Assembly (NCBI GenBank): GCA_964019335.1
Contig: OZ025724.1
Span: 372,001 to 436,000, forward strand
Length of the DNA: 64,000 nucleotides
Origin: Diplonema japonicum
Taxonomy: Eukaryota > Protista > Euglenozoa: Diplonemea
Reading direction: 5' to 3'
Shown here: positions 53,823 through 64,000 of the stretch, piece by piece
Numbering within the stretch: position 1 is the stretch's first letter
How the letters are laid out: each line of letters opens with the position of its first letter
The notes under the pieces: generated by a model
Databases searched by the model: none
The model's input: only the letters and a program-made list of their open reading frames with translations
Told to the model about the DNA's origin: nothing
Program-made: the position numbers and the translations under genes

Positions 53823-53874
<52 letters not shown>

Positions 53875-55605
53875 CTCAACACCTGCGATGCCTGCTGCCT
53901 TGTCCCTTGCGATCTGGGCAACCTTCTTCACAGCGGCCTTGAAGGCTGGACCCCTCTCTGTGTAGTAGGCTTCGAGGGCGGCCTCCATGTCGAAGGGAGG
54001 CAGGTCGCTCTTGGAGACGATGGGGAGGCTGAGGTAGGAGGACTTGATGTGCACCGTGTTCTGGGCCAACAGCTGCTTCCCCTCGAAGTCTTCCGTGAGG
54101 GGGAGCCCGTTGTTCGGGTTGGGCTGGAAGCGTGGGGCGTTCGACGATGACACTGAGAGGCGCACCCTGTGGCCCTTCGGGATGATGTACGAGGTGTTCC
54201 ACATGCTGATCTCCACACCGTACACGGTCCCAGGAACCATCGGCTTCGGCGCCACCCCTCCTGTCGTCCCGTCCCTCCACCTCATCCGTGCGATCCCGTC
54301 GTTGATGAGCAGAGCCCGCCCGTCTGGGTACAGGTGCGTCAGCTTCGCCGTGAAGTCCGTGTCTGTCGCGTTGCTCTCCACCTCCAGCCAGGCCCGCAGG
54401 GGCCCCGTCATCACCAGGTCCTCCCCCAGAGGGCTCGACGCGAACACCAGAACATCCGTCCGGTTCTGCTCCACCACCCGCTGGTCCATCGCCCCACACT
54501 TGATCATCAGGTTGTTGCCCCCTCGTGTCTCCACAGGCCTCGACGGGTCGTACACATAGGAAAGTGGCGCCTCCTCTGTAGCCTGCTGCTCCGACAGCAC
54601 CCCTCCACTCCTCAAATAGTACTTCCTCTCCGTGAAGGACGGGAACCTCTCCACAGTGCTCCAGTAGTTCCCAGGCCCGCTCTTGTCCATGCCCCCAGAT
54701 GAGTCCGCCGACCCCAGCACGAACAGCGTGATGCCCCTGATCAGTTCGGGTACCTTCCCCCCTGCGAAGGTGTCAAGTGCCATGGCAGCTGCCAGTTCCG
54801 ACTGAGAGCTCGCAGAATCGTACACAGGACAGCCCCAGATTTGGCAGTGTCCACAAGGACCTACCACCATGTAAGTCTTGCTGGGCCCTTCATTGTAACA
54901 GTCGTAGGCTGCCAGGTTGCCTTGCAAAAAGATGTCGTACCACCCAGCTTGGAGTATGGCAGGGAAGTCAACCAGATCAGCACACTTCCCTGTCATGTTC
55001 ACGGGGTTCCACCACTCTCCTGGGAATTCATTTGCACGTGCTTCATGTCTCAAAGCTGGGAACTGCCTGGGGAAGATCGCAGCAAGCCAGCCATTCGTGA
55101 GGGCGTCTCTGAAGGCCCCACCGGGGAACACAAAGTTATGAGGCAGCACTGATGCCCACATGACGAACTGCTTCTTCAGCCACTGTGGCTTGTCCATCAC
55201 GGAGAAGAAAGAGCCCAGTCCGTCCGAGGAGACACCTGTTTGGTAGACGTCGCCGTTGGCCCAAGGCTGGCCTGCCAACCACCTGAAAGAGTCGTAGCTG
55301 TCATTACCTGAGGTCCTCCACAAGGAGAAGTCCTGACCTTTCGAGTCGCCACTCCCACGCATGTCTTGCCTCACTGCACAGTAGTCGGGGCCCAGTGCCT
55401 CCTTCATCGCCACTACGATCTCCTCTGTCCCATGGTGCGTGTAGGTGCTCGTCTCGAAAAGGATTGTCTTCTTCGTGCTCCCCTTGTCCAGGTCGCAGTT
55501 GATCCACGTCGACAGGTTGAACCCATCACGCATCGTGATCATCACCTTCTGCTCCTCGCATAATGCTGTGCACAGCAGCGCAGCCACAGCGGTCGCTCGC
55601 AACAT
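53233..55605. repeat. Segmental duplication, near-identical block, copy 2
   Basis: Matches 39832-42192. Confidence 0.95.
53869..55605 (-). CDS. Secreted CocE/NonD family hydrolase, copy 2
   Basis: Paralogue of 40456..42192; ATG at 55605. Confidence 0.92.
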
Positions 55606-55761
55606 TTTCACTTCGTTTACAATCAACTGTCAATAGGAGGTGAACATCCATATGTACAAAGAAAAAAAAACCCAAGAAATGCTTAAAAAGAAAACTGAAA
55701 CATAGTCAGTTAGCTATAGGAACACATGACACATAAGTAGTGAACCCTGAAATGTTAACTT

Positions 55762-58700
55762 TTATCCAGGACCTTCTACTAAATAGTTGGTGTTCTGGAA
55801 AGGTGGATAACCACACTCGGTATTCGGTTGTAGCCCATGGTTTTGAGCTGGTTGGGACACTTCTGGTGGCTGGGAGAACCCAGGTTGGTACTGTGGCATG
55901 TACCCTACTGGATATACTCCCTGCTGTGTATAGCTCTGGGGTTGGTCAACTGGAAGCGGCTGCCCGGATACAGGTGACATGTGCTGTGGAACTGATGGCG
56001 AAGTTGGGTCCTGGTGCTGTGGCGTGTACTCAGCTGGATATACTTCCTGCTGTGTATAATTTTGTGACTGGTTCAGCGGAATAGCTTCCTGATAATGCGT
56101 ATAACTTTGCGGATATACTCCCTGCTGTGTATAGCTCTGGGGTTGGTCAACTGGAAGCGGCTGCCCGGATACAGGTGACACGTGCTGTGGAACTGATGGC
56201 GAAGTTGGGTCCTGGTGCTGTGGCGTGTACTCAGCTGGATATACTTCCTGCTGTGTATAATTTTGTGACTGGTTCAGCGGAATAGCTTCCTGATAATGCG
56301 TATAACTTTGCGGATATACTGTTGGTATGTGCTGCTCCAATAGTTCGACACGGTGTGTGAGCTGCTTGACGATGTCTTCCCATTGCTTATCTCTCTTCAT
56401 CAGCAGTTCAATGGCAGCGCGTGTGTCTGATACTTGTGAATCGATAGTTGGTTGACCATGCTCCACGGACTGCCAGTTGCCGAGATGCGGGTTTACTTGG
56501 TGTGCAATGCTAGGAAAGTGCGATGCATCAACTTGTGTCTGTGGAGATGTACCAGTAGCACGAACGTTCACGTGTGGAGGGTTTAGTTGTGGGTGCACGT
56601 CGGGAGGGGCTCTTACTTTTTTAATTTTCCTCATTACAGGTGTGTGCTCCACATCTGTGACTTGATATTGTGCAGTGGCCACTGGCAAGGTCTCACGTGT
56701 TAGGCCGCCTGCCGAAGACTGTGCTGTAGTTGCCATTGGTGTCAAGTTGCTTGCAGAACCGGCCGAAAGAGGTACTGAGGGATCCATGCTGGCAGTATTT
56801 GAGAGCAAATCGGGAACTGGGGATCGTGCTGCCTGAACTGGAAGCGTTTGCCCATTGGATACAGGTGGCACGTGCTGTGGAACTACACTGGATGTCGAAG
56901 TTGAGCTTGGCGCCACCGCTGCCGTTGTTTGGGACATTGTTGGGACAGAGGTGGGAATTGCCGTCCGTGTGAGGGTGTCAGAAACTGCTGATGTGGGTGG
57001 CGTAGCTGTAGTTTGCATTCTTACTAGTGCCGAAGTAAGGGGCTGTGTTGGAGCAACTGTGGAAGGTGCCAACGTGTCGGGGGACTGTGTTGCGGGGGTT
57101 GTTGGAGCGACTGTGGAAGGTGCCAGGGTGTTAGGGGACGGTGTTGCAAGCGCATTGACGTAGGGGAAGGGTGCTGCTGGGGCTGCCGTTGATGACAAGG
57201 GTGTCGGCGGAGCTAGAGGCTCTGTAGGTGAGTCAAATACATAATCCATAGATCTGAGCTGGCTCCTTGTGACCTCCCGAAGTTTACTATTTGACGCGTT
57301 GACTGCTGCACTCGGAAGTGCTTCAGTTGCTGAGACATTGGGTTCAGCTGCCATAGTCACTGTCGTATGTACACTCTCTGCAGCTTCGGGGATCGTCTCC
57401 TCTCTTTTACTTGGAGAGAGCCCGGCTGATTTCTGCAAGTTCTCCGCCGTGTTGTCCGGTTCAAAAAAATCTAAAACCTTTTTCCCCTTTTTCTTCTTCT
57501 TCGTCCCACTCTGTTCAACACCACCAGTAACGATCTTTGTGTCAAGGATCGTCTCTTCTCTTTTACTTGCCGGAGAAGGCCCGGCTGATTCCTGCAAGTT
57601 CTCCGCCTCGTTGTCTGGCTCAAAAATATCTAAAACCTTTTTCCCCTTTTTCTTCTTCTTCGTCCCACTCTGTTCAACACCACCAGTAACGATCTTTGTG
57701 TCAACTCTTGTTGGGGATGGTTGTTCCTCTACTATCCTGGCACGCTCCCTGTCTCCACATGACTCACCCCACATGTCTAAAACTGCCTGCACCGCTTGGT
57801 CGCATGTGTCCTCGCTTGTGTAGTAACTGCAGTATTGCTTCGCGGCTTCCGGCTCGAGCATCTTGACTACTTCTATTTTGAACTTCTGTTCAACTCTACT
57901 GTGCCGCTCTACGTACAGCAGCATTTCGCCATGCTGCCAAAGCTCTTTCCTGTCGCTTCCAATTGTGACCTCGAACATTTTATTAAACGTATCGCCTGCA
58001 TAGACACTGTATGGTTCGGTCCATTCGTTCTGCTTTTTTTCGTAGTCGGCAAAAGAAACCGTAATACGTTTGACGTCGCCTAAAGTGATAGCAGATGAAT
58101 ACAGGGCATCGATATTCGGTCCTTCGAATGTGTCCTCTTTCTGCACTTCCACATTTTCGGGAAGAGTTGCCGGGTGCCAGAACCCATCCCCAGAGGTACA
58201 TTTGTGGTGATAGCTCATCATATATGTCGGGTGTCTTAAGCTCGCCAGCCGCAGCATGTCCATGTGTGGAACCGGCACCCCGTTGGTGTGGTGCACAGGC
58301 TTCTCGTCATCGAAGTTGTAAAGCAGCTCTGGCTTCACGTCAGGGCTGCCTGGTTTAGTGTGCAGGTAGATCTTCTTCTGATGCACAGGATACCCCTTTG
58401 GTCTGGGCGGGTCGACATCTTCGTCGAACTTGTCACTTAAGTACATTCTCAGCTTCCTGCTGACGAACATACCTGCATCGATGTAATCGGCCCATTTTTT
58501 CTCCAAGTGTGCTTTGAAGGCTTCTTCTAGCTGGCACTCTTTAATTGCTTTAAACGCTTTTTTGGCATAACTTTTTAGTTTTATACATTCCTCGCATTTG
58601 AAGATTCTGATATTAGGTTCATAGTATTCTGCAGTTTTTGGTTCCTTCTGGGCACATCCTTCACATCTCATGTTTTCCAGAACACTGAGTTTGTACTTCG

Positions 58701-61700
58701 GACCCTCGTGCAGCGACACATAGTCCTCCTCGATAGTGCAAAACTCCTTTTGCAGATCACAGAGCAGTGAATAGATATCTGCAGCCCACATCGGGATGAA
58801 CGGCCAATGCATGTGCTGCGATGCTTTGTCTGGTCTACTGATATCAAGCAGGATTGTCATGTTGTAGTGATTCGGGATCTTGTCTGCGACTAAGCGGTGG
58901 ATGATCTCTGCTATGGTCCATGTGCCGTACTTCGGGTGGTGGGGGAAGACGATCTCCTCAGAGGATATCCCGTCTAGATCAATAGCCAGCCGTGACATGA
59001 GTGATACAGCCTCATTCGTGTACCCAACGACGCTTCGGGTAAGCGCCTCCGTCATCCTGGTGTGCACTTCAGTGCTTGTGAAGCACCTGCTGTATGATGA
59101 CTGCATGCCTTGGAACCTGAAGTGCGTTGTCCATGCTGGTTTGTTCTTCTTCAAATCGATGGTCTTCAGCCCGTGCAGGATAGAGACAGCCCCTGTGTCC
59201 TTCGCACCCATCTTCGTCACTTTCGCCTTTGTGCCTTGCTTCGCCTTCTGCTCGTTGTATGATGCTAGCTGCGATTCTTCAAACAGCTTTCCGCTGAATG
59301 TGAACACTGGGCAGTCCTCAGGGAGGGTCTTCATCTTGTACAGATTTCCCAAGCGTGTGTCCTGCCTGCCGTACTTCGCAAAGAGGTACCGTACCCTCTC
59401 ATGCAGTGTTGCCAGACCCATGTCCAGGTACATCCCGCCAAGGAGGGACTCCAAGAGGTCACCATGCACCTTTTCGTTGCGTTCAGCGAGAGGAGTGACA
59501 CCGAGCACAAGAGAAGACCTGTTCTCGAAGAGCTTCTTTGCGATGGGCAGCAGGCCTGCGTCTTTGTACTCGTCACCGTGGCCGTTGGTAACTGTCGTTG
59601 TGAAGTACGTGATGTGTGTTGTCCATTCCAGAGGGTTGTCATGTTTATCAATAGTGTGACAGTCACACGCCACACAAAGGTCCAGGGCAGCGTCACCGAC
59701 AAATTCCTGGCGGTTGAACTTCACTGTGTTAGGCCGCAGAGCATCGGTGACATGGCTAGTGTTTGTGTACTGTGAGTGAGTGCCTTCTAGTAAATGAGGT
59801 ACAAGATCACTAGGCCACTGCTGCCTCTTAAGAAAGAGCATTACGTTCTTGTCTTCTAAATCTTTTACAGTAAACTCGTATTGCTTTTCCTTAGTTACCG
59901 CTTCAATGGCTTCGCGTACCCCGTCCCATGCCACGCGACTGAGTTCATAGTGCGGCATTGTCTCACCGGCTTCGTACCTCCGCATGTCATCGTCAATCAG
60001 CTGTACCAACATGTTGAGCTCACACCTCTCCATCGCCTTGGCACTACTAGGCCCCTGCTCACACTTAGTCACGTATTTTTTATGATTCTCTTTGAGCATC
60101 TCTGGATCGATGTTTATCGCTTTTTCGCCGTCGTCCCTATGCCAATATCTCATGGTTGGGAGGTAAACTTCTCTCTTGGTCGACTGTACTTCTTGAATGT
60201 GAGTGTTATCTTCGAACCGCACCAGCACGATGGGATCGGTCCTGTTATGCACTTTGCATTTGCGAAGCACCCATCCCTCCCGGAGTAGGTCCCTGACATC
60301 TAAATACACGTGGTAGTCGAGCTTGCCATAGATCGTCTCCGACTCCCAATAGTCCTCCATTGCGTCGACAGTACAACGCGTGGCGAGAACTACCTTGCAG
60401 TAGGGGGCACACTTGATCCCTACTTTTTGGTTCTTATTTGCGGCAGTGATCCTCTCGATGTTTGTGACCGAATGGTAGAGCACGTCCTCGAGACCATGCT
60501 GCTTCATGTACTGCTCCAGGACTTCCTCATCCGTATTGTCGAACTCCAGCTTCTCGTAAACCTTGTCACTCTCCTCGAGGTTAACTCTGCTGTCGCTAGA
60601 GTGGTGGTATAGTGCCCTGCCCTTCCCTTCTTTGAAGTCCAGTCGTCCCAACACATCGTGCATAGACATGAATTCGGCAAGCGCCTCCTCCGAGGCAGCC
60701 GGCTCACCACCCTCTTTGAGCTGTGCTACGATTAAATCCAAGGGCACCCACCCATTGGTTTCAAAGTCGACTTTGTTTTCTTCCGATAGATCAAATTTGT
60801 CAACAATTCCCTTCTCTCCCCGAAAGATCACTTTTACATGCTTCCAGACATTTTTTGGATTTAGTGGAAACTCGCCGCGTTCCTCCTGAGGAAGGCCATT
60901 CTCACTTTTAATCCTCTTCTCCCTGGGGATCACTATGTCGGAATCTGCAGTTACTTGAGCATCTTGTTTTGCAATTTTCATCTCACGATCTAGGTACATT
61001 GTGATGGCCATTTCTTCGGCGTAAGAAGGATCGTCGCTTTTGTGGGGACACTCATAGACCACTTTGTTGTTAGCGAATATACTTGCTTGGCCGTCTTTGT
61101 ATTTGCACTCCAGCTCCTGAAAGTAGTGCTTAAAGATGACATGGTGAACTCTTTTTGTCAAGATCCTTTTCGCAGAAACCTTACTATCTTGCAACCCAAC
61201 ACGTATCAGTATATTCTTCTGCTTCTTGATGCTCAGAGTGATCTCGCAACTGGTTTTCCCGTCCTTCTCTACGTACTTGTCACCGTTGTTTACCACACAG
61301 TAATGCTTCACTAGCTGTGTCCCATACAAGTTGCCTAGCGACTGCTCGCTGTGGCACGACAAGTAGCGCTTGTGGAGGACGCAAGCGCAGGCTTGTAGAT
61401 CGGTATGGCCCAAGCAGCTAAGGAGGACATAGCCAGTGGACACACAAATCTTTCTTGTCGTGGAAGAAGCTAAAGGGGACATGTTCCAATCCCTCGTGAA
61501 AAGGCTGTCGCAGTTCCTGTTAGCCATCAGCTCCATGTGATATTCTGCAAGTTTCCCAACTTTACTCGGAAAGCTGTCGTGCAACCATACCGCGCAGATA
61601 AGCTTCATGAACCTTATCCCGCACCTCTCGTGGCTCTTGAAACATTCCTCTGACTGTGCCGCTTCTATAAATTGCTGCGCCGCCTCCTCCGCCACACCTG

Positions 61701-61770
61701 GTGGTATGTCATCTTGTGTCAGGAAGTCCACCACATTCACCTTCTCCACTTGCCTCGGGGGCTCTGCCAT
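55762..61770 (-). CDS. Multidomain Tpt1/KptA-like + RNase III + AEP/PrimPol-like protein
   Basis: NGWVPL...RALYHHS...LYHSV; FNRQEFVGDAALDL...KVHGDLLESLLGGMYLDMG; AIDLDG...SQHMHW...IDAGMF.SRKLRM..SDK. Confidence 0.82.
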   Translation of the reverse strand: MAEPPRQVEKVNVVDFLTQDDIPPGVAEEAAQQFIEAAQSEECFKSHERCGIRFMKLICAVWLHDSFPSKVGKLAEYHMELMANRNCDSLFTRDWNMSPLASSTTRKICVSTGYVLLSCLGHTDLQACACVLHKRYLSCHSEQSLGNLYGTQLVKHYCVVNNGDKYVEKDGKTSCEITLSIKKQKNILIRVGLQDSKVSAKRILTKRVHHVIFKHYFQELECKYKDGQASIFANNKVVYECPHKSDDPSYAEEMAITMYLDREMKIAKQDAQVTADSDIVIPREKRIKSENGLPQEERGEFPLNPKNVWKHVKVIFRGEKGIVDKFDLSEENKVDFETNGWVPLDLIVAQLKEGGEPAASEEALAEFMSMHDVLGRLDFKEGKGRALYHHSSDSRVNLEESDKVYEKLEFDNTDEEVLEQYMKQHGLEDVLYHSVTNIERITAANKNQKVGIKCAPYCKVVLATRCTVDAMEDYWESETIYGKLDYHVYLDVRDLLREGWVLRKCKVHNRTDPIVLVRFEDNTHIQEVQSTKREVYLPTMRYWHRDDGEKAINIDPEMLKENHKKYVTKCEQGPSSAKAMERCELNMLVQLIDDDMRRYEAGETMPHYELSRVAWDGVREAIEAVTKEKQYEFTVKDLEDKNVMLFLKRQQWPSDLVPHLLEGTHSQYTNTSHVTDALRPNTVKFNRQEFVGDAALDLCVACDCHTIDKHDNPLEWTTHITYFTTTVTNGHGDEYKDAGLLPIAKKLFENRSSLVLGVTPLAERNEKVHGDLLESLLGGMYLDMGLATLHERVRYLFAKYGRQDTRLGNLYKMKTLPEDCPVFTFSGKLFEESQLASYNEQKAKQGTKAKVTKMGAKDTGAVSILHGLKTIDLKKNKPAWTTHFRFQGMQSSYSRCFTSTEVHTRMTEALTRSVVGYTNEAVSLMSRLAIDLDGISSEEIVFPHHPKYGTWTIAEIIHRLVADKIPNHYNMTILLDISRPDKASQHMHWPFIPMWAADIYSLLCDLQKEFCTIEEDYVSLHEGPKYKLSVLENMRCEGCAQKEPKTAEYYEPNIRIFKCEECIKLKSYAKKAFKAIKECQLEEAFKAHLEKKWADYIDAGMFVSRKLRMYLSDKFDEDVDPPRPKGYPVHQKKIYLHTKPGSPDVKPELLYNFDDEKPVHHTNGVPVPHMDMLRLASLRHPTYMMSYHHKCTSGDGFWHPATLPENVEVQKEDTFEGPNIDALYSSAITLGDVKRITVSFADYEKKQNEWTEPYSVYAGDTFNKMFEVTIGSDRKELWQHGEMLLYVERHSRVEQKFKIEVVKMLEPEAAKQYCSYYTSEDTCDQAVQAVLDMWGESCGDRERARIVEEQPSPTRVDTKIVTGGVEQSGTKKKKKGKKVLDIFEPDNEAENLQESAGPSPASKREETILDTKIVTGGVEQSGTKKKKKGKKVLDFFEPDNTAENLQKSAGLSPSKREETIPEAAESVHTTVTMAAEPNVSATEALPSAAVNASNSKLREVTRSQLRSMDYVFDSPTEPLAPPTPLSSTAAPAAPFPYVNALATPSPNTLAPSTVAPTTPATQSPDTLAPSTVAPTQPLTSALVRMQTTATPPTSAVSDTLTRTAIPTSVPTMSQTTAAVAPSSTSTSSVVPQHVPPVSNGQTLPVQAARSPVPDLLSNTASMDPSVPLSAGSASNLTPMATTAQSSAGGLTRETLPVATAQYQVTDVEHTPVMRKIKKVRAPPDVHPQLNPPHVNVRATGTSPQTQVDASHFPSIAHQVNPHLGNWQSVEHGQPTIDSQVSDTRAAIELLMKRDKQWEDIVKQLTHRVELLEQHIPTVYPQSYTHYQEAIPLNQSQNYTQQEVYPAEYTPQHQDPTSPSVPQHVSPVSGQPLPVDQPQSYTQQGVYPQSYTHYQEAIPLNQSQNYTQQEVYPAEYTPQHQDPTSPSVPQHMSPVSGQPLPVDQPQSYTQQGVYPVGYMPQYQPGFSQPPEVSQPAQNHGLQPNTECGYPPFQNTNYLVEGPG
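55910..56320 (-). repeat. Intragenic 201-bp tandem duplication (Q/P/Y-rich)
   Basis: ggatatact recurs at 56312, 56111 and 55910; two near-identical 67-aa units. Confidence 0.9.
57390..57704 (-). repeat. Intragenic 159-bp tandem duplication containing KKKKKGKK
   Basis: DTKIVTGGVEQSGTKKKKKGKKVLD twice, 159 bp apart. Confidence 0.9.
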
Positions 61771-61950: not shown

Positions 61951-64000
61951 CTACAGCTCTCCGCAGAGGATCCAGAAGTCAGGGTTATCACCTGGGCCCA
62001 TCTCTTTAATCCAATCGCTAGAGGCTGTCTGTAGGGTGTTGCGATTGGTGCAGAACATCTCTGCGAGCTTAACAAGGATATCGTGCAGGATTGCAGGCGT
62101 GAGTGAAGTGTTGCTTGCCAGGCGCTCGTACTCTGCTTGGATGGTTGGAGACACGAACTGCGGTTTATCTGTCACGATATTGGTATCATCCGCATCATCG
62201 TCGATCACCTCCAGCACATCTGCTTGCCTCGCTGAGTTGCCTCCTTCCCAGCGGCATGTGCTCGAGCACCCGTCATTGTTGTTCCTGTTACCATCGTCGC
62301 ACTGCTCAGCAGGGTCGGTCGTACCGTCCCCGCAGCATGTCTTCTTGCTCAAGTATCCTGCCACCAGCCATTCCCAGTCGGGGGGGCTGTTCCCTTCCAC
62401 TTGCAGTGCTAAGTTGTCCACCCCATATGTGTACGAGTGCCCATCGGGGAGGTCGGTAATATCCCACATGTCTCGAATGGTTACACGCGTCCCGAACAAG
62501 TTCCACAACTTGCCTCCGTTAGAGTTATACACGAAGGGCATTTCAGAATCAAGCTGCACTCTGGACAAAGGGATGATCCCCGACGAGGCACCGTTGACAG
62601 CAGGGTAGTAGTGCTTCTGCGCGAGGTTTGACTTGTCAACCTTATCATATTCGTGGTAGTCTTGCCACAAGGCGTACAGCCTATCGATATTGGCATGATG
62701 CACGAAGAAGAGTGGGTCGTCTGGCGACCTGCGTGTCGCCATTTGGCCCCCAATAAAGTTGTGGGGTGCTGCATGTGGGCCAGCTTCAAGGCGTGGGCGG
62801 AAGTCTTTGTACTTGTGGTGTGCAGTGATAACTGTCCCGACCTCTGCTTCGCTTGCGAAGGCGTAGGTGTTAACGTTGCCATTCGACCTCTTCAAACACG
62901 TCCCCTCTGAAGTGGCCCAGCTGGCGGCGATGCCCGAGTTGACGCACTGCAGTGTCGACGTCATGTGGTGCTCAAAGTCGCCGAAAGTCTTGTGCCTCAG
63001 CGGCGTGGACTTGCGCTCATCATCTGCATCGCGCTCCCAGTCCCAGTATGGTACAGTGATACACTCGTAGCCAGTGATACTCCTCAAGAGATTCTCGTAC
63101 TGCAGCAGATACCACCTGTGCCAAGGAAGGAATGCAGACGTGCTGTGCGCATATTTCATCATGTAGCTGTGCGTGTCGACCAACTTGTTGTAGTCCCACG
63201 GCTTCTGTCTCTTCAGTTCGTCGACTGCATTGACGTAACGCATCCTCTCGCTGCACAGAAGGGTGCTGTAGGATTTCCTCACTCTCGGAGGGCAAGTGTT
63301 GGGCAATGGAGGGGGTGGCGGCGGAGGGGGCTCAATAGGTACACCTCCAGTGTGGTACTTCACCACCAGCTTAGCTCCCACGCCATCTCCGTCGATTGAC
63401 TCAGCCACTCTCCTACGATTCCCTACCACATTCCTTATAACCACAGACACGGCATTGCCAGCTGACCACCCCTGCTTGTCAATGACTGCTTGGAGTTCCG
63501 CTGCCATGTCAGGCGACTCGAAAGTAGTGCCCACTGACCAAACTGTGCTAGTTTTCCATGGCACACCAGCCCCCAACGACCTGCCCGAGGGACGCCTCGA
63601 AGACGACCAACTTCGTGAATTTGTTGAGTCATCGAACGCCAGCTCTAAGTGGATTGCACCTGTTTTTCTCTCGTCGCACTTGAAGACTACTTTCGCTTCT
63701 ACAACAGTAGCGCCTTTGGGTACGTTCACACGCCTCCAGCGGATGCCCACCTTCTGCGCTGTGCCTTTCTCGGTGGCCAGCTCAAGGTCGGAGCTGTCGT
63801 AGATCATGCCGTTGGGCTTCTCCTCAACATCGTCGTTGCAGTTGGCGATGTACGACGTACAGGTGACTACGTCAACCTTTGTAGGCACAGGGGTGGGCTG
63901 TGGAGTAGGCTGCGGAGTGGGAAGCGGTGTCGGTAAAGGCGTGGGTGCTGGTGTCGGAGGTGGAGTGGGCCGTGGGGTAGGGTTTGGTGTAGGTCCAGGT
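61951..64000 (-). CDS. Multidomain tyrosinase (5'-partial)
   Basis: CuA H....AH...FLPWHR; CuB PHAAPHNFIGG...SPDDPLFFVHHANIDR; CGDG...EQCDDGN...DGCSSTC repeat; frame stays open through a PT linker to the window edge. Confidence 0.92.
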   Translation of the reverse strand, partial: PGPTPNPTPRPTPPPTPAPTPLPTPLPTPQPTPQPTPVPTKVDVVTCTSYIANCNDDVEEKPNGMIYDSSDLELATEKGTAQKVGIRWRRVNVPKGATVVEAKVVFKCDERKTGAIHLELAFDDSTNSRSWSSSRRPSGRSLGAGVPWKTSTVWSVGTTFESPDMAAELQAVIDKQGWSAGNAVSVVIRNVVGNRRRVAESIDGDGVGAKLVVKYHTGGVPIEPPPPPPPPLPNTCPPRVRKSYSTLLCSERMRYVNAVDELKRQKPWDYNKLVDTHSYMMKYAHSTSAFLPWHRWYLLQYENLLRSITGYECITVPYWDWERDADDERKSTPLRHKTFGDFEHHMTSTLQCVNSGIAASWATSEGTCLKRSNGNVNTYAFASEAEVGTVITAHHKYKDFRPRLEAGPHAAPHNFIGGQMATRRSPDDPLFFVHHANIDRLYALWQDYHEYDKVDKSNLAQKHYYPAVNGASSGIIPLSRVQLDSEMPFVYNSNGGKLWNLFGTRVTIRDMWDITDLPDGHSYTYGVDNLALQVEGNSPPDWEWLVAGYLSKKTCCGDGTTDPAEQCDDGNRNNNDGCSSTCRWEGGNSARQADVLEVIDDDADDTNIVTDKPQFVSPTIQAEYERLASNTSLTPAILHDILVKLAEMFCTNRNTLQTASSDWIKEMGPGDNPDFWILCGEL

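Follow-up and report, generated by a model that had tools for sequence, protein, structure and literature searches.

Among the closest described systems to the protein reported here are the Dicer-like 1 (DCL1) proteins of kinetoplastids, which in trypanosomatids are the entry point of cytoplasmic RNA interference (RNAi), a main genetic tool in these organisms. TbDCL1 of Trypanosoma brucei is a cytoplasmic Dicer for which there is in-vitro dicing evidence (PMC3359990), and a dcl1 knockout of Leishmania guyanensis had ~20-fold lower 21–23-nt viral small interfering RNAs (siRNAs), those remaining carrying shifted 3' non-templated additions (bioRxiv 10.64898/2026.08.09.743808). We have analyzed a stretch of 64,000 nucleotides of a diplonemid genome (assembly GCA_964019335.1, contig OZ025724.1, positions 372,001 to 436,000 of the forward strand), hereafter the window, and we find that a complete open reading frame (ORF) of 2002 amino acids on its minus strand (55762–61770) very probably encodes the DCL1-type Dicer of this diplonemid, which belongs to the Dicer-like 1 family of euglenozoans, with the domain roles discussed below. 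The original prediction, made from the sequence alone, had placed three folds in this one frame, Tpt1/KptA, RNase III and archaeo-eukaryotic primase (AEP), and had considered a role in small-RNA generation as a substitute for Dicer. The three folds are there in the predicted order and the link to small RNAs holds by homology, but the protein is no substitute: it is itself the Dicer-like 1 of the lineage, with a second, degenerate RNase III domain (RNase IIIa).

The combination of domains is known in kinetoplastids. Searched against Pfam, DCL1 of Trypanosoma rangeli contains four domains, in order and all above threshold: La HTH in kinetoplastid DICER domain (La_HTH_kDCL, PF18177, residues 270–353, E 3.6e-8), KptA in kinetoplastid DICER domain (KptA_kDCL, PF18176, 357–499, E 2.8e-12), Ribonuclease III domain (PF00636, 719–794, E 2.6e-6) and Prim-pol 4 (PPL4, PF18188, 880–1022, E 3.8e-35). 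Since these families match in the same order, the KptA, RNase III and AEP architecture is already catalogued computationally, at least for kinetoplastid Dicers, and the suggestion that it might be undescribed in euglenozoans does not stand at that level. Two papers (PMC6222260 and PMC5862659) credit the AEP/prim-pol domains of kinetoplastid RNAi and RNA-repair proteins to Burroughs & Aravind. Krishnan et al. point to a 2014 source and to Burroughs & Aravind 2016, and Kazlauskas et al. 2018 (PMC5862659) state that Burroughs & Aravind 2016 describe divergent AEPs in multidomain proteins of the RNA-repair type, mainly from kinetoplastids. DCL1 is not credited with a primase or KptA domain in Barnes et al. 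2012, in two AEP papers with lists of trypanosome AEPs or in the 2026 Leishmania preprint, which takes the domains of Dcl1 from Panther, Pfam and Gene3D (bioRxiv 10.64898/2026.08.09.743808); neither is one mentioned for DCL1 or DCL2 of Diplonema papillatum in the available text of Valach 2023 (PMC10161547). The KptA-like and AEP domains of DCL1 are thus in Pfam and have seemingly been ignored by the experimental RNAi literature that we searched. What is added here, as read from the window, Diplonema and Namystynia sequences, is that the full layout is common to diplonemids and kinetoplastids, which would place the architecture before the split of the two groups, and that at least its RNase IIIb–AEP part is also present in a euglenid. 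This opens no new category, but it sharpens the question of how euglenozoan Dicers make, measure or modify small RNAs.

The ORF is a single uninterrupted frame of 2002 codons with an ATG start, and its N-terminus aligns with the start of the D. ambulator protein. A whole-protein Pfam scan gave only sub-threshold matches (RNase III at residues 688–785, E 5e-4; African swine fever virus (ASFV) C962R AEP at 1074–1118, E 0.015) and a sequence search of the PDB only Tpt1 chains at E 0.5–0.9, so that family profiles and structure prediction were needed. A word-indexed search retrieved five full-length relatives, all from diplonemids and one of them titled "Dicer, partial [Diplonema papillatum]". An exhaustive phmmer search with residues 1–1200 against 1.84 billion representatives gave just 11 proteins, and all the named ones are euglenozoan: D. 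japonicum, D. ambulator, D. papillatum (two proteins, one of them DIPPA_00339), Rhynchopus humris, Namystynia karyoxenos, a transcript of Euglena gracilis and the "Dicer 1" of T. rangeli. The last was reached directly at E 7.1e-4 (library of 1.84e9), and when the diplonemid profile was compared with T. rangeli DCL1 by hhalign, the probability was 99.4% and E 3.9e-21 over 324 columns covering RNase IIIb and the PPL4 region. In a maximum-likelihood tree of the RNase IIIb–AEP region (support moderate, 88–93 ultrafast bootstrap, with the distant rows on long branches) the window protein falls inside Diplonemidae, beside D. japonicum and D. ambulator, to which it is 54 and 50% identical over this region, i.e., 50–54% to Diplonema sensu stricto. 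Judged by these comparisons, it is an ortholog of the DCL1 of diplonemids (D. papillatum DIPPA_01275 and the D. japonicum and D. ambulator transcripts, colinear with it over residues 33–1334) and a homolog of Trypanosoma DCL1. When the 62.5-Mb genome that carries it was searched in six frames with D. japonicum DCL1, this was the one locus to come up; genome-wide six-frame searches with the Pfam RNase III and KptA_kDCL hidden Markov models (HMMs) gave nothing, these models being too distant here for the result to inform on paralogues.

For the RNase III domains, the PDB was searched with a profile built from six diplonemid proteins, which matched Arabidopsis DCL3 at E 1.6e-11 and the human, mouse and fly Dicers at E 5e-9 to 5e-8. 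It covers Arabidopsis DCL3 and human Dicer with two separate stretches, profile positions 690–814 falling on RNase IIIb and 43–92 on RNase IIIa, which means that the window protein has two RNase III domains and not the single one originally proposed; the N-terminal stretch 43–92 also resembles, more weakly, RNase III of bacteria and Rnt1 of yeast. The core acids of RNase III are E40, D44, D107 and E110 (Aquifex numbering). All four are present in the RNase IIIb domain (residues 664–800, window 59371–59781, on the minus strand as all features of the protein) as E689, D693, D771 and E774, as had been read from the sequence at the outset. In the RNase IIIa-like domain (residues ~40–145, 61336–61653) only E48 is left of the four, I52 stands in place of the aspartate of the GD signature and the second signature reads GYVLLSCLGH. 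The degeneracy is found, with small variations, in every family member, T. rangeli included, and the RNase IIIa of the window protein is predicted to be dead. Besides RNase IIIa, residues 1–300 may contain a dsRBD-like piece (dsRBD, double-stranded RNA-binding domain).

Between the two RNase III domains lies a Tpt1/KptA-fold module (residues 303–545, 60136–60864) composed of a winged-helix "La-HTH" lobe and a KptA lobe, in agreement with the Tpt1/KptA-like segment of the original prediction. The AlphaFold2 (AF2) model of residues 290–560, built with the family alignment, had a mean predicted local distance difference test (pLDDT) of 69.7 and a predicted template modelling score of 0.61. Foldseek against the PDB gave 17 matches at E<=1e-3, all of them Tpt1/KptA (best 3.3e-5, probability 1.0), with alignments of ~220 columns on enzymes of 177 residues. 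The VIA search, which is independent of Foldseek, was topped by mouse Tpt1 (Z 8.9, 186 of 206 residues), Thermococcus KptA (Z 8.6, 164 aa) and Runella Tpt1 (Z 7.2), and its lower ranks contained many winged-helix and La-motif proteins that match the N-lobe only. Both lobes therefore align over nearly the full length of the RNA 2'-phosphotransferase, and the GWV and RALY.HS motifs are kept, but the active site is not. An Arg-His-Arg-Arg tetrad and an HGT motif for NAD+ reportedly define active Tpt1. When the motifs were mapped by residue-level phmmer alignment to 7kw8 and by the family alignment, LRH corresponded to F316-R317-G318 (the arginine kept and nearly invariant in the family, the histidine lost), RALYGHS to R385-A-L-Y-H-H-S (arginine kept), LFHGT to E409-F-D-N-T413 (histidine lost, HGT being D411-N412-T413) and R-H-H-V-H to Y432-H-S-V (arginine lost). 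Half of the tetrad is thus present, R317 and R385, while its histidine is G318 and its other arginine Y432. The early reading that LRH had been replaced was right for the histidine and wrong for the arginine. The assignment of LYHSV to LYHGT has to be withdrawn, as phmmer aligns LYHSV to R-H-H-V-H and LEFDNT to LFHGT. With the HGT histidine and two of the four tetrad residues replaced, the binding of NAD+ that had been carried over from Tpt1 is probably not transferable. By the definition given above, the fold is present and the phosphotransferase chemistry almost certainly gone; the two kept arginines suggest phosphate binding at an RNA end. A half tetrad, DNT for HGT and the location between two RNase III domains are what set this module apart from Tpt1/KptA.

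The third module is an AEP/Prim-Pol domain of PPL4 type (residues 878–1186, 58213–59139). The AF2 model of residues 850–1330 had a mean pLDDT of 62.5, with a confident core above 80 at model residues 80–250. In the Foldseek comparison with the PDB, among the matches listed, ranks 1–50 are all AEPs, with ASFV PrimPol at 8e-3 and a probability of ~0.9 and others to monkeypox virus (MPXV) E5, vaccinia D5, the LigD polymerase and the herpes simplex virus primase. VIA gave ASFV PrimPol (Z 9.2, 159 residues, root-mean-square deviation 4.6), human PrimPol (7.7), vaccinia D5 (7.2) and MPXV E5 (6.7), followed by Pyrococcus primase (5.9), human PriS (5.7) and LigD (5.6). In the viral structure library BFVD all top matches were AEPs as well, C962R-like and D5-like primases of giant viruses, the best at 4.4e-4; over the top PDB and BFVD matches, E runs from 4e-4 to 1e-2. 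By sequence, the diplonemid profile did not find an AEP in the PDB. The three catalytic motifs pointed out in the original prediction are intact: motif I, AIDLDG, with D931 and D933; motif II, SQHMH, with S984 and H986; and motif III, YIDAGMF...SRKLRMYLSDK, with D1098, R1105, K1106, R1108 and K1114. These metal-binding and nucleotide-binding motifs, the last together with the basic stretch YIDAGMFVSRKLRMYLSDK that follows it, are retained by all the diplonemids, Euglena and T. rangeli, while overall identity across the family goes down to 23–27%. The motif III region of Pfam AEP_C962R matches six of the nine family members.

A CxxC...CxxC insert resembling a zinc ribbon, also noticed in the original reading, lies between motifs II and III (C1036, C1039, C1059 and C1062; 58585–58683), and the wider stretch around it (model residues 170–255, about aa 1019–1104) resembles an ArfGAP-type zinc finger in VIA (Z 5–6). 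The insert is missing in Rhynchopus, and kinetoplastids have other inserts at this place. Compared to the AEPs of nucleocytoplasmic large DNA viruses and the PrimPol clade (ASFV C962R PrimPol, human PrimPol, vaccinia D5/MPXV E5), the domain has the same fold and the same DxD, sxH and hD motifs, whereas the window protein carries neither a helicase domain nor the C-terminal UL52-type zinc finger, has the zinc-ribbon-like insert inside the catalytic domain and places the AEP within an RNA-processing enzyme. Sequence similarity to this clade is marginal, with Pfam AEP_C962R at E 9e-4, below its cut-off.

Taken over its whole length, the window protein has the same order of domains as kinetoplastid DCL1 (TbDCL1; T. 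rangeli A0A1B2LUN7), i.e., degenerate RNase IIIa, La-HTH/KptA, RNase IIIb and PPL4 AEP, and shares with it the motifs GW(V/M)PL, RA.Y.H, (I/F)D(L/V)DG, S.H.H.P and SRKLRMYL(S/N)DK. However, identity is just 20–25%, the kinetoplastid-built Pfam HMMs miss the window protein, and two features, the CxxC...CxxC insert of its AEP and the long tail of low complexity, are peculiar to it in this comparison. Diplonemids also differ from kinetoplastids in having an RdRP (RNA-dependent RNA polymerase) and several Piwi/Ago proteins, according to Valach 2023. Like canonical Dicers (human Dicer, Arabidopsis DCL3, Giardia Dicer), the protein unites two RNase III domains in a single chain, with RNase IIIb matching at E 1e-8 to 1e-11. 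Helicase, PAZ, platform and C-terminal double-stranded RNA-binding domain (dsRBD) were not detected by Pfam over the full protein. Unlike in canonical Dicers, RNase IIIa is dead and located at the extreme N-terminus, ~500 residues including the KptA fold separate it from RNase IIIb, and an AEP polymerase domain is appended. As to the other relatives, Rhynchopus has all the domains, with diverged KptA motifs, and the Euglena transcript begins inside the KptA-like module.

Valach 2023 (PMC10161547) names the two Dicers of D. papillatum DCL1 and DCL2 and gives other diplonemids a single DCL1-like Dicer. DIPPA_00339 (P0007 in our set) is DCL2, a protein of 840 aa in which both RNase III domains are retained (IIIa with LGD) and the KptA motifs are degenerate, and which stops before the AEP domain; what was reported as missing from DCL2 thus includes the AEP. 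Two partial DCL1-like gene calls came from ENA contigs: P0008 (760 aa, contig of 470 kb) has LGD in RNase IIIa and stops within RNase IIIb, and P0009 (179 aa, contig of 329 kb) resembles the start of the Euglena AEP. They look like exon-sized pieces of intron-containing genes in other euglenozoans.

The pattern of decay in the window protein, with RNase IIIa and the KptA active site degenerate and those of RNase IIIb and the AEP intact, is the starting point for a possible mechanism. RNase IIIb would cut double-stranded RNA (dsRNA). As RNase IIIa is apparently dead, one molecule would cut one strand, and dicing would need either a partner or two molecules joined as a IIIb–IIIb dimer, failing which the protein would only nick. 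There is a parallel in the same lineage, since the editosome endonucleases combine two RNase III proteins, one active and one inactive (PMC9508840). The KptA-like module, which would no longer transfer phosphate to NAD+, may act as a binder of RNA ends or phosphates, standing in for the absent PAZ and platform. The AEP, finally, may be an active nucleotidyl transferase working on the RNA substrate or product, either by copying RNA to make or extend dsRNA or by adding or filling in nucleotides at the 3' ends of small RNAs. The second option is raised because loss of dcl1 in Leishmania shifts the 3' non-templated additions, which is a lead and not evidence. That all the catalytic residues of the AEP are kept while RNase IIIa and KptA have decayed strengthens the case for an essential role of the polymerase domain. 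We propose only tentatively, as a possibility short of an even chance, that a PPL4-type AEP was already active in the DCL1 of the ancestor of euglenids, diplonemids and kinetoplastids, so that DCL1 would both cut RNA and polymerise or 3'-tail it. If this were true, DCL1 could for instance be what adds the non-templated nucleotides at the 3' ends of viral siRNAs in Leishmania, or it could make dsRNA without a primer, dicing would take place as a IIIb–IIIb dimer and the KptA-derived module would be the device that measures from the end.

Several observations weigh against the assignment of the window protein to DCL1 or against the roles given to its domains. The protein has no match at E<=1 to PF18176 (KptA_kDCL), PF18177 (La_HTH_kDCL) or PF18188 (PPL4), although the PPL4 HMM matches five of the nine family members, those above threshold including T. 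rangeli, Namystynia, Euglena and an EukProt protein. It appears too divergent for the kinetoplastid-built HMMs, so its membership, as a divergent member of the family, is drawn from homologues, profile comparison and predicted folds. These folds come from AF2 models of middling confidence (pLDDT 62.5 and 69.7), and in the PDB search with the AEP region every Foldseek E-value was above 1e-3. RNA data for the ORF were not found, none of the public runs matching the stretch being on record as RNA. An RdRP-like role of the AEP is not required, since diplonemids have a canonical RdRP (Valach 2023). And the window DCL1 is without the C-terminal domain that is common to the DCL1s of D. japonicum, D. 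ambulator, D. papillatum, Rhynchopus and Namystynia, the low-complexity tail taking its place.

Of the other explanations, the one that survives best concerns the added modules. The AEP and KptA-like modules might be inert scaffolds or RNA-binding surfaces, the protein being a Dicer with odd accessory domains and no nucleic-acid synthesis. The KptA module is clearly short of catalytic residues, the dead RNase IIIa shows that inactive domains are tolerated in this protein, activity of a DCL1 AEP is not reported in the literature searched and the 2026 Leishmania RNAi preprint does not annotate the domain. However, DxD, SxH, hD and SRKLRMYLSDK are invariant from diplonemids and Euglena to Trypanosoma at just 23–27% overall identity, and invariance of this kind usually marks enzymes whose catalysis is under selection. 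We regard this explanation as rather unlikely.

An RNA-repair or modification enzyme that cuts, heals and resynthesises RNA outside RNAi, RNA repair being among the roles considered in the original prediction, is improbable. KptA and AEP domains have been described in predicted multidomain RNA-repair proteins (PMC5862659, citing Burroughs & Aravind 2016), and the same genome does encode a protein of this type, with MJ1316, EEP, kinase, 2H and PPL4 domains. Against this, genetics and biochemistry in T. brucei and Leishmania tie the orthologous family to the production of siRNAs (PMC3359990; bioRxiv 10.64898/2026.08.09.743808), the layout with two RNase III domains fits Dicers best, and ligase, kinase and phosphoesterase domains were not found by Pfam in the window protein. 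That a long ORF of this kind is an assembly or gene-model artefact fusing separate genes is scarcely credible, for although no matching run is recorded as RNA and short-read contigs break at tandem repeats in the tail, the frame is unbroken, the full-length proteins in the D. japonicum and D. ambulator transcriptomes run colinear with it, and single contigs from three separate studies cross 57675–61770, where every conserved domain lies, and show no difference there.

The second PPL4 protein of this genome is a 1275-aa ORF on another contig (L003:2244-6071 (+), i.e., G000:C78:281243-285070), the sole locus found there by the PPL4 HMM. In Pfam it contains an MJ1316 RNA cyclic-end recognition domain (aa 36–101), an EEP nuclease/phosphatase (190–415), a weak P-loop kinase (465–487), a 2H/LigT phosphoesterase (690–845) and the PPL4 Prim-pol (923–1068, E 1.3e-26, with AEP_C962R also above threshold at E 6.7e-12), and it looks like a multidomain protein of the RNA-repair type. 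When the DCL1 family profile was aligned to it with hhalign, motif I was aligned but the match was not significant (E 0.13).

After the AEP, the DCL1-type protein of the window continues with a conserved alpha/beta module (residues 1217–1312, ELWxxGE...ER...K..EP; 57835–58122), recognized by its invariant columns and secondary structure. A weak VIA match to dsRBD1 of Loquacious (Z 3.7) makes it possibly dsRBD-like. The remainder is a low-complexity tail rich in P, T, S and Q (residues 1331–2002, 55765–57780), in which the duplicated K-rich unit seen in the original prediction is confirmed and two tandem repeats are present: K-rich units at aa 1357 and 1410 (159 bp x2, 92% identical, 57390–57704) and Q/P/Y units at aa 1821 and 1888 (201 bp x2, 99%, 55910–56320). 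Both duplications are recent. The C-terminal domain that other diplonemid DCL1s have and this one lacks was sought downstream of the ORF and elsewhere, and was not found: the next ORF encodes the dipeptidyl peptidase described below; with tblastn, the C-termini of four diplonemid DCL1s had no match in the window better than E 0.49; and a search of the whole genome gave a low-complexity match only.

Public runs from four studies carry the stretch, and the contig sets of three were compared with the window. The only breaks in these independent contigs fall at the tail's two tandem repeats. In run X1, one contig omits exactly one 201-bp unit (55980 to 56182), either by copy-number variation or by assembly collapse, and a low-depth X9 contig is one base short at 57488, probably an error. 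The ORF lies within a run of genes on the same strand, both of its neighbours being functionally unrelated to it and to RNAi. Downstream there is an S15 X-Pro dipeptidyl peptidase (53869–55626, minus strand; PepX_C, E 2e-32), and upstream a tyrosinase-domain protein with a DUF4215 repeat (61951–63888, minus strand; E 2e-38). These flanking ORFs on the same strand are consistent with a polycistronic arrangement.

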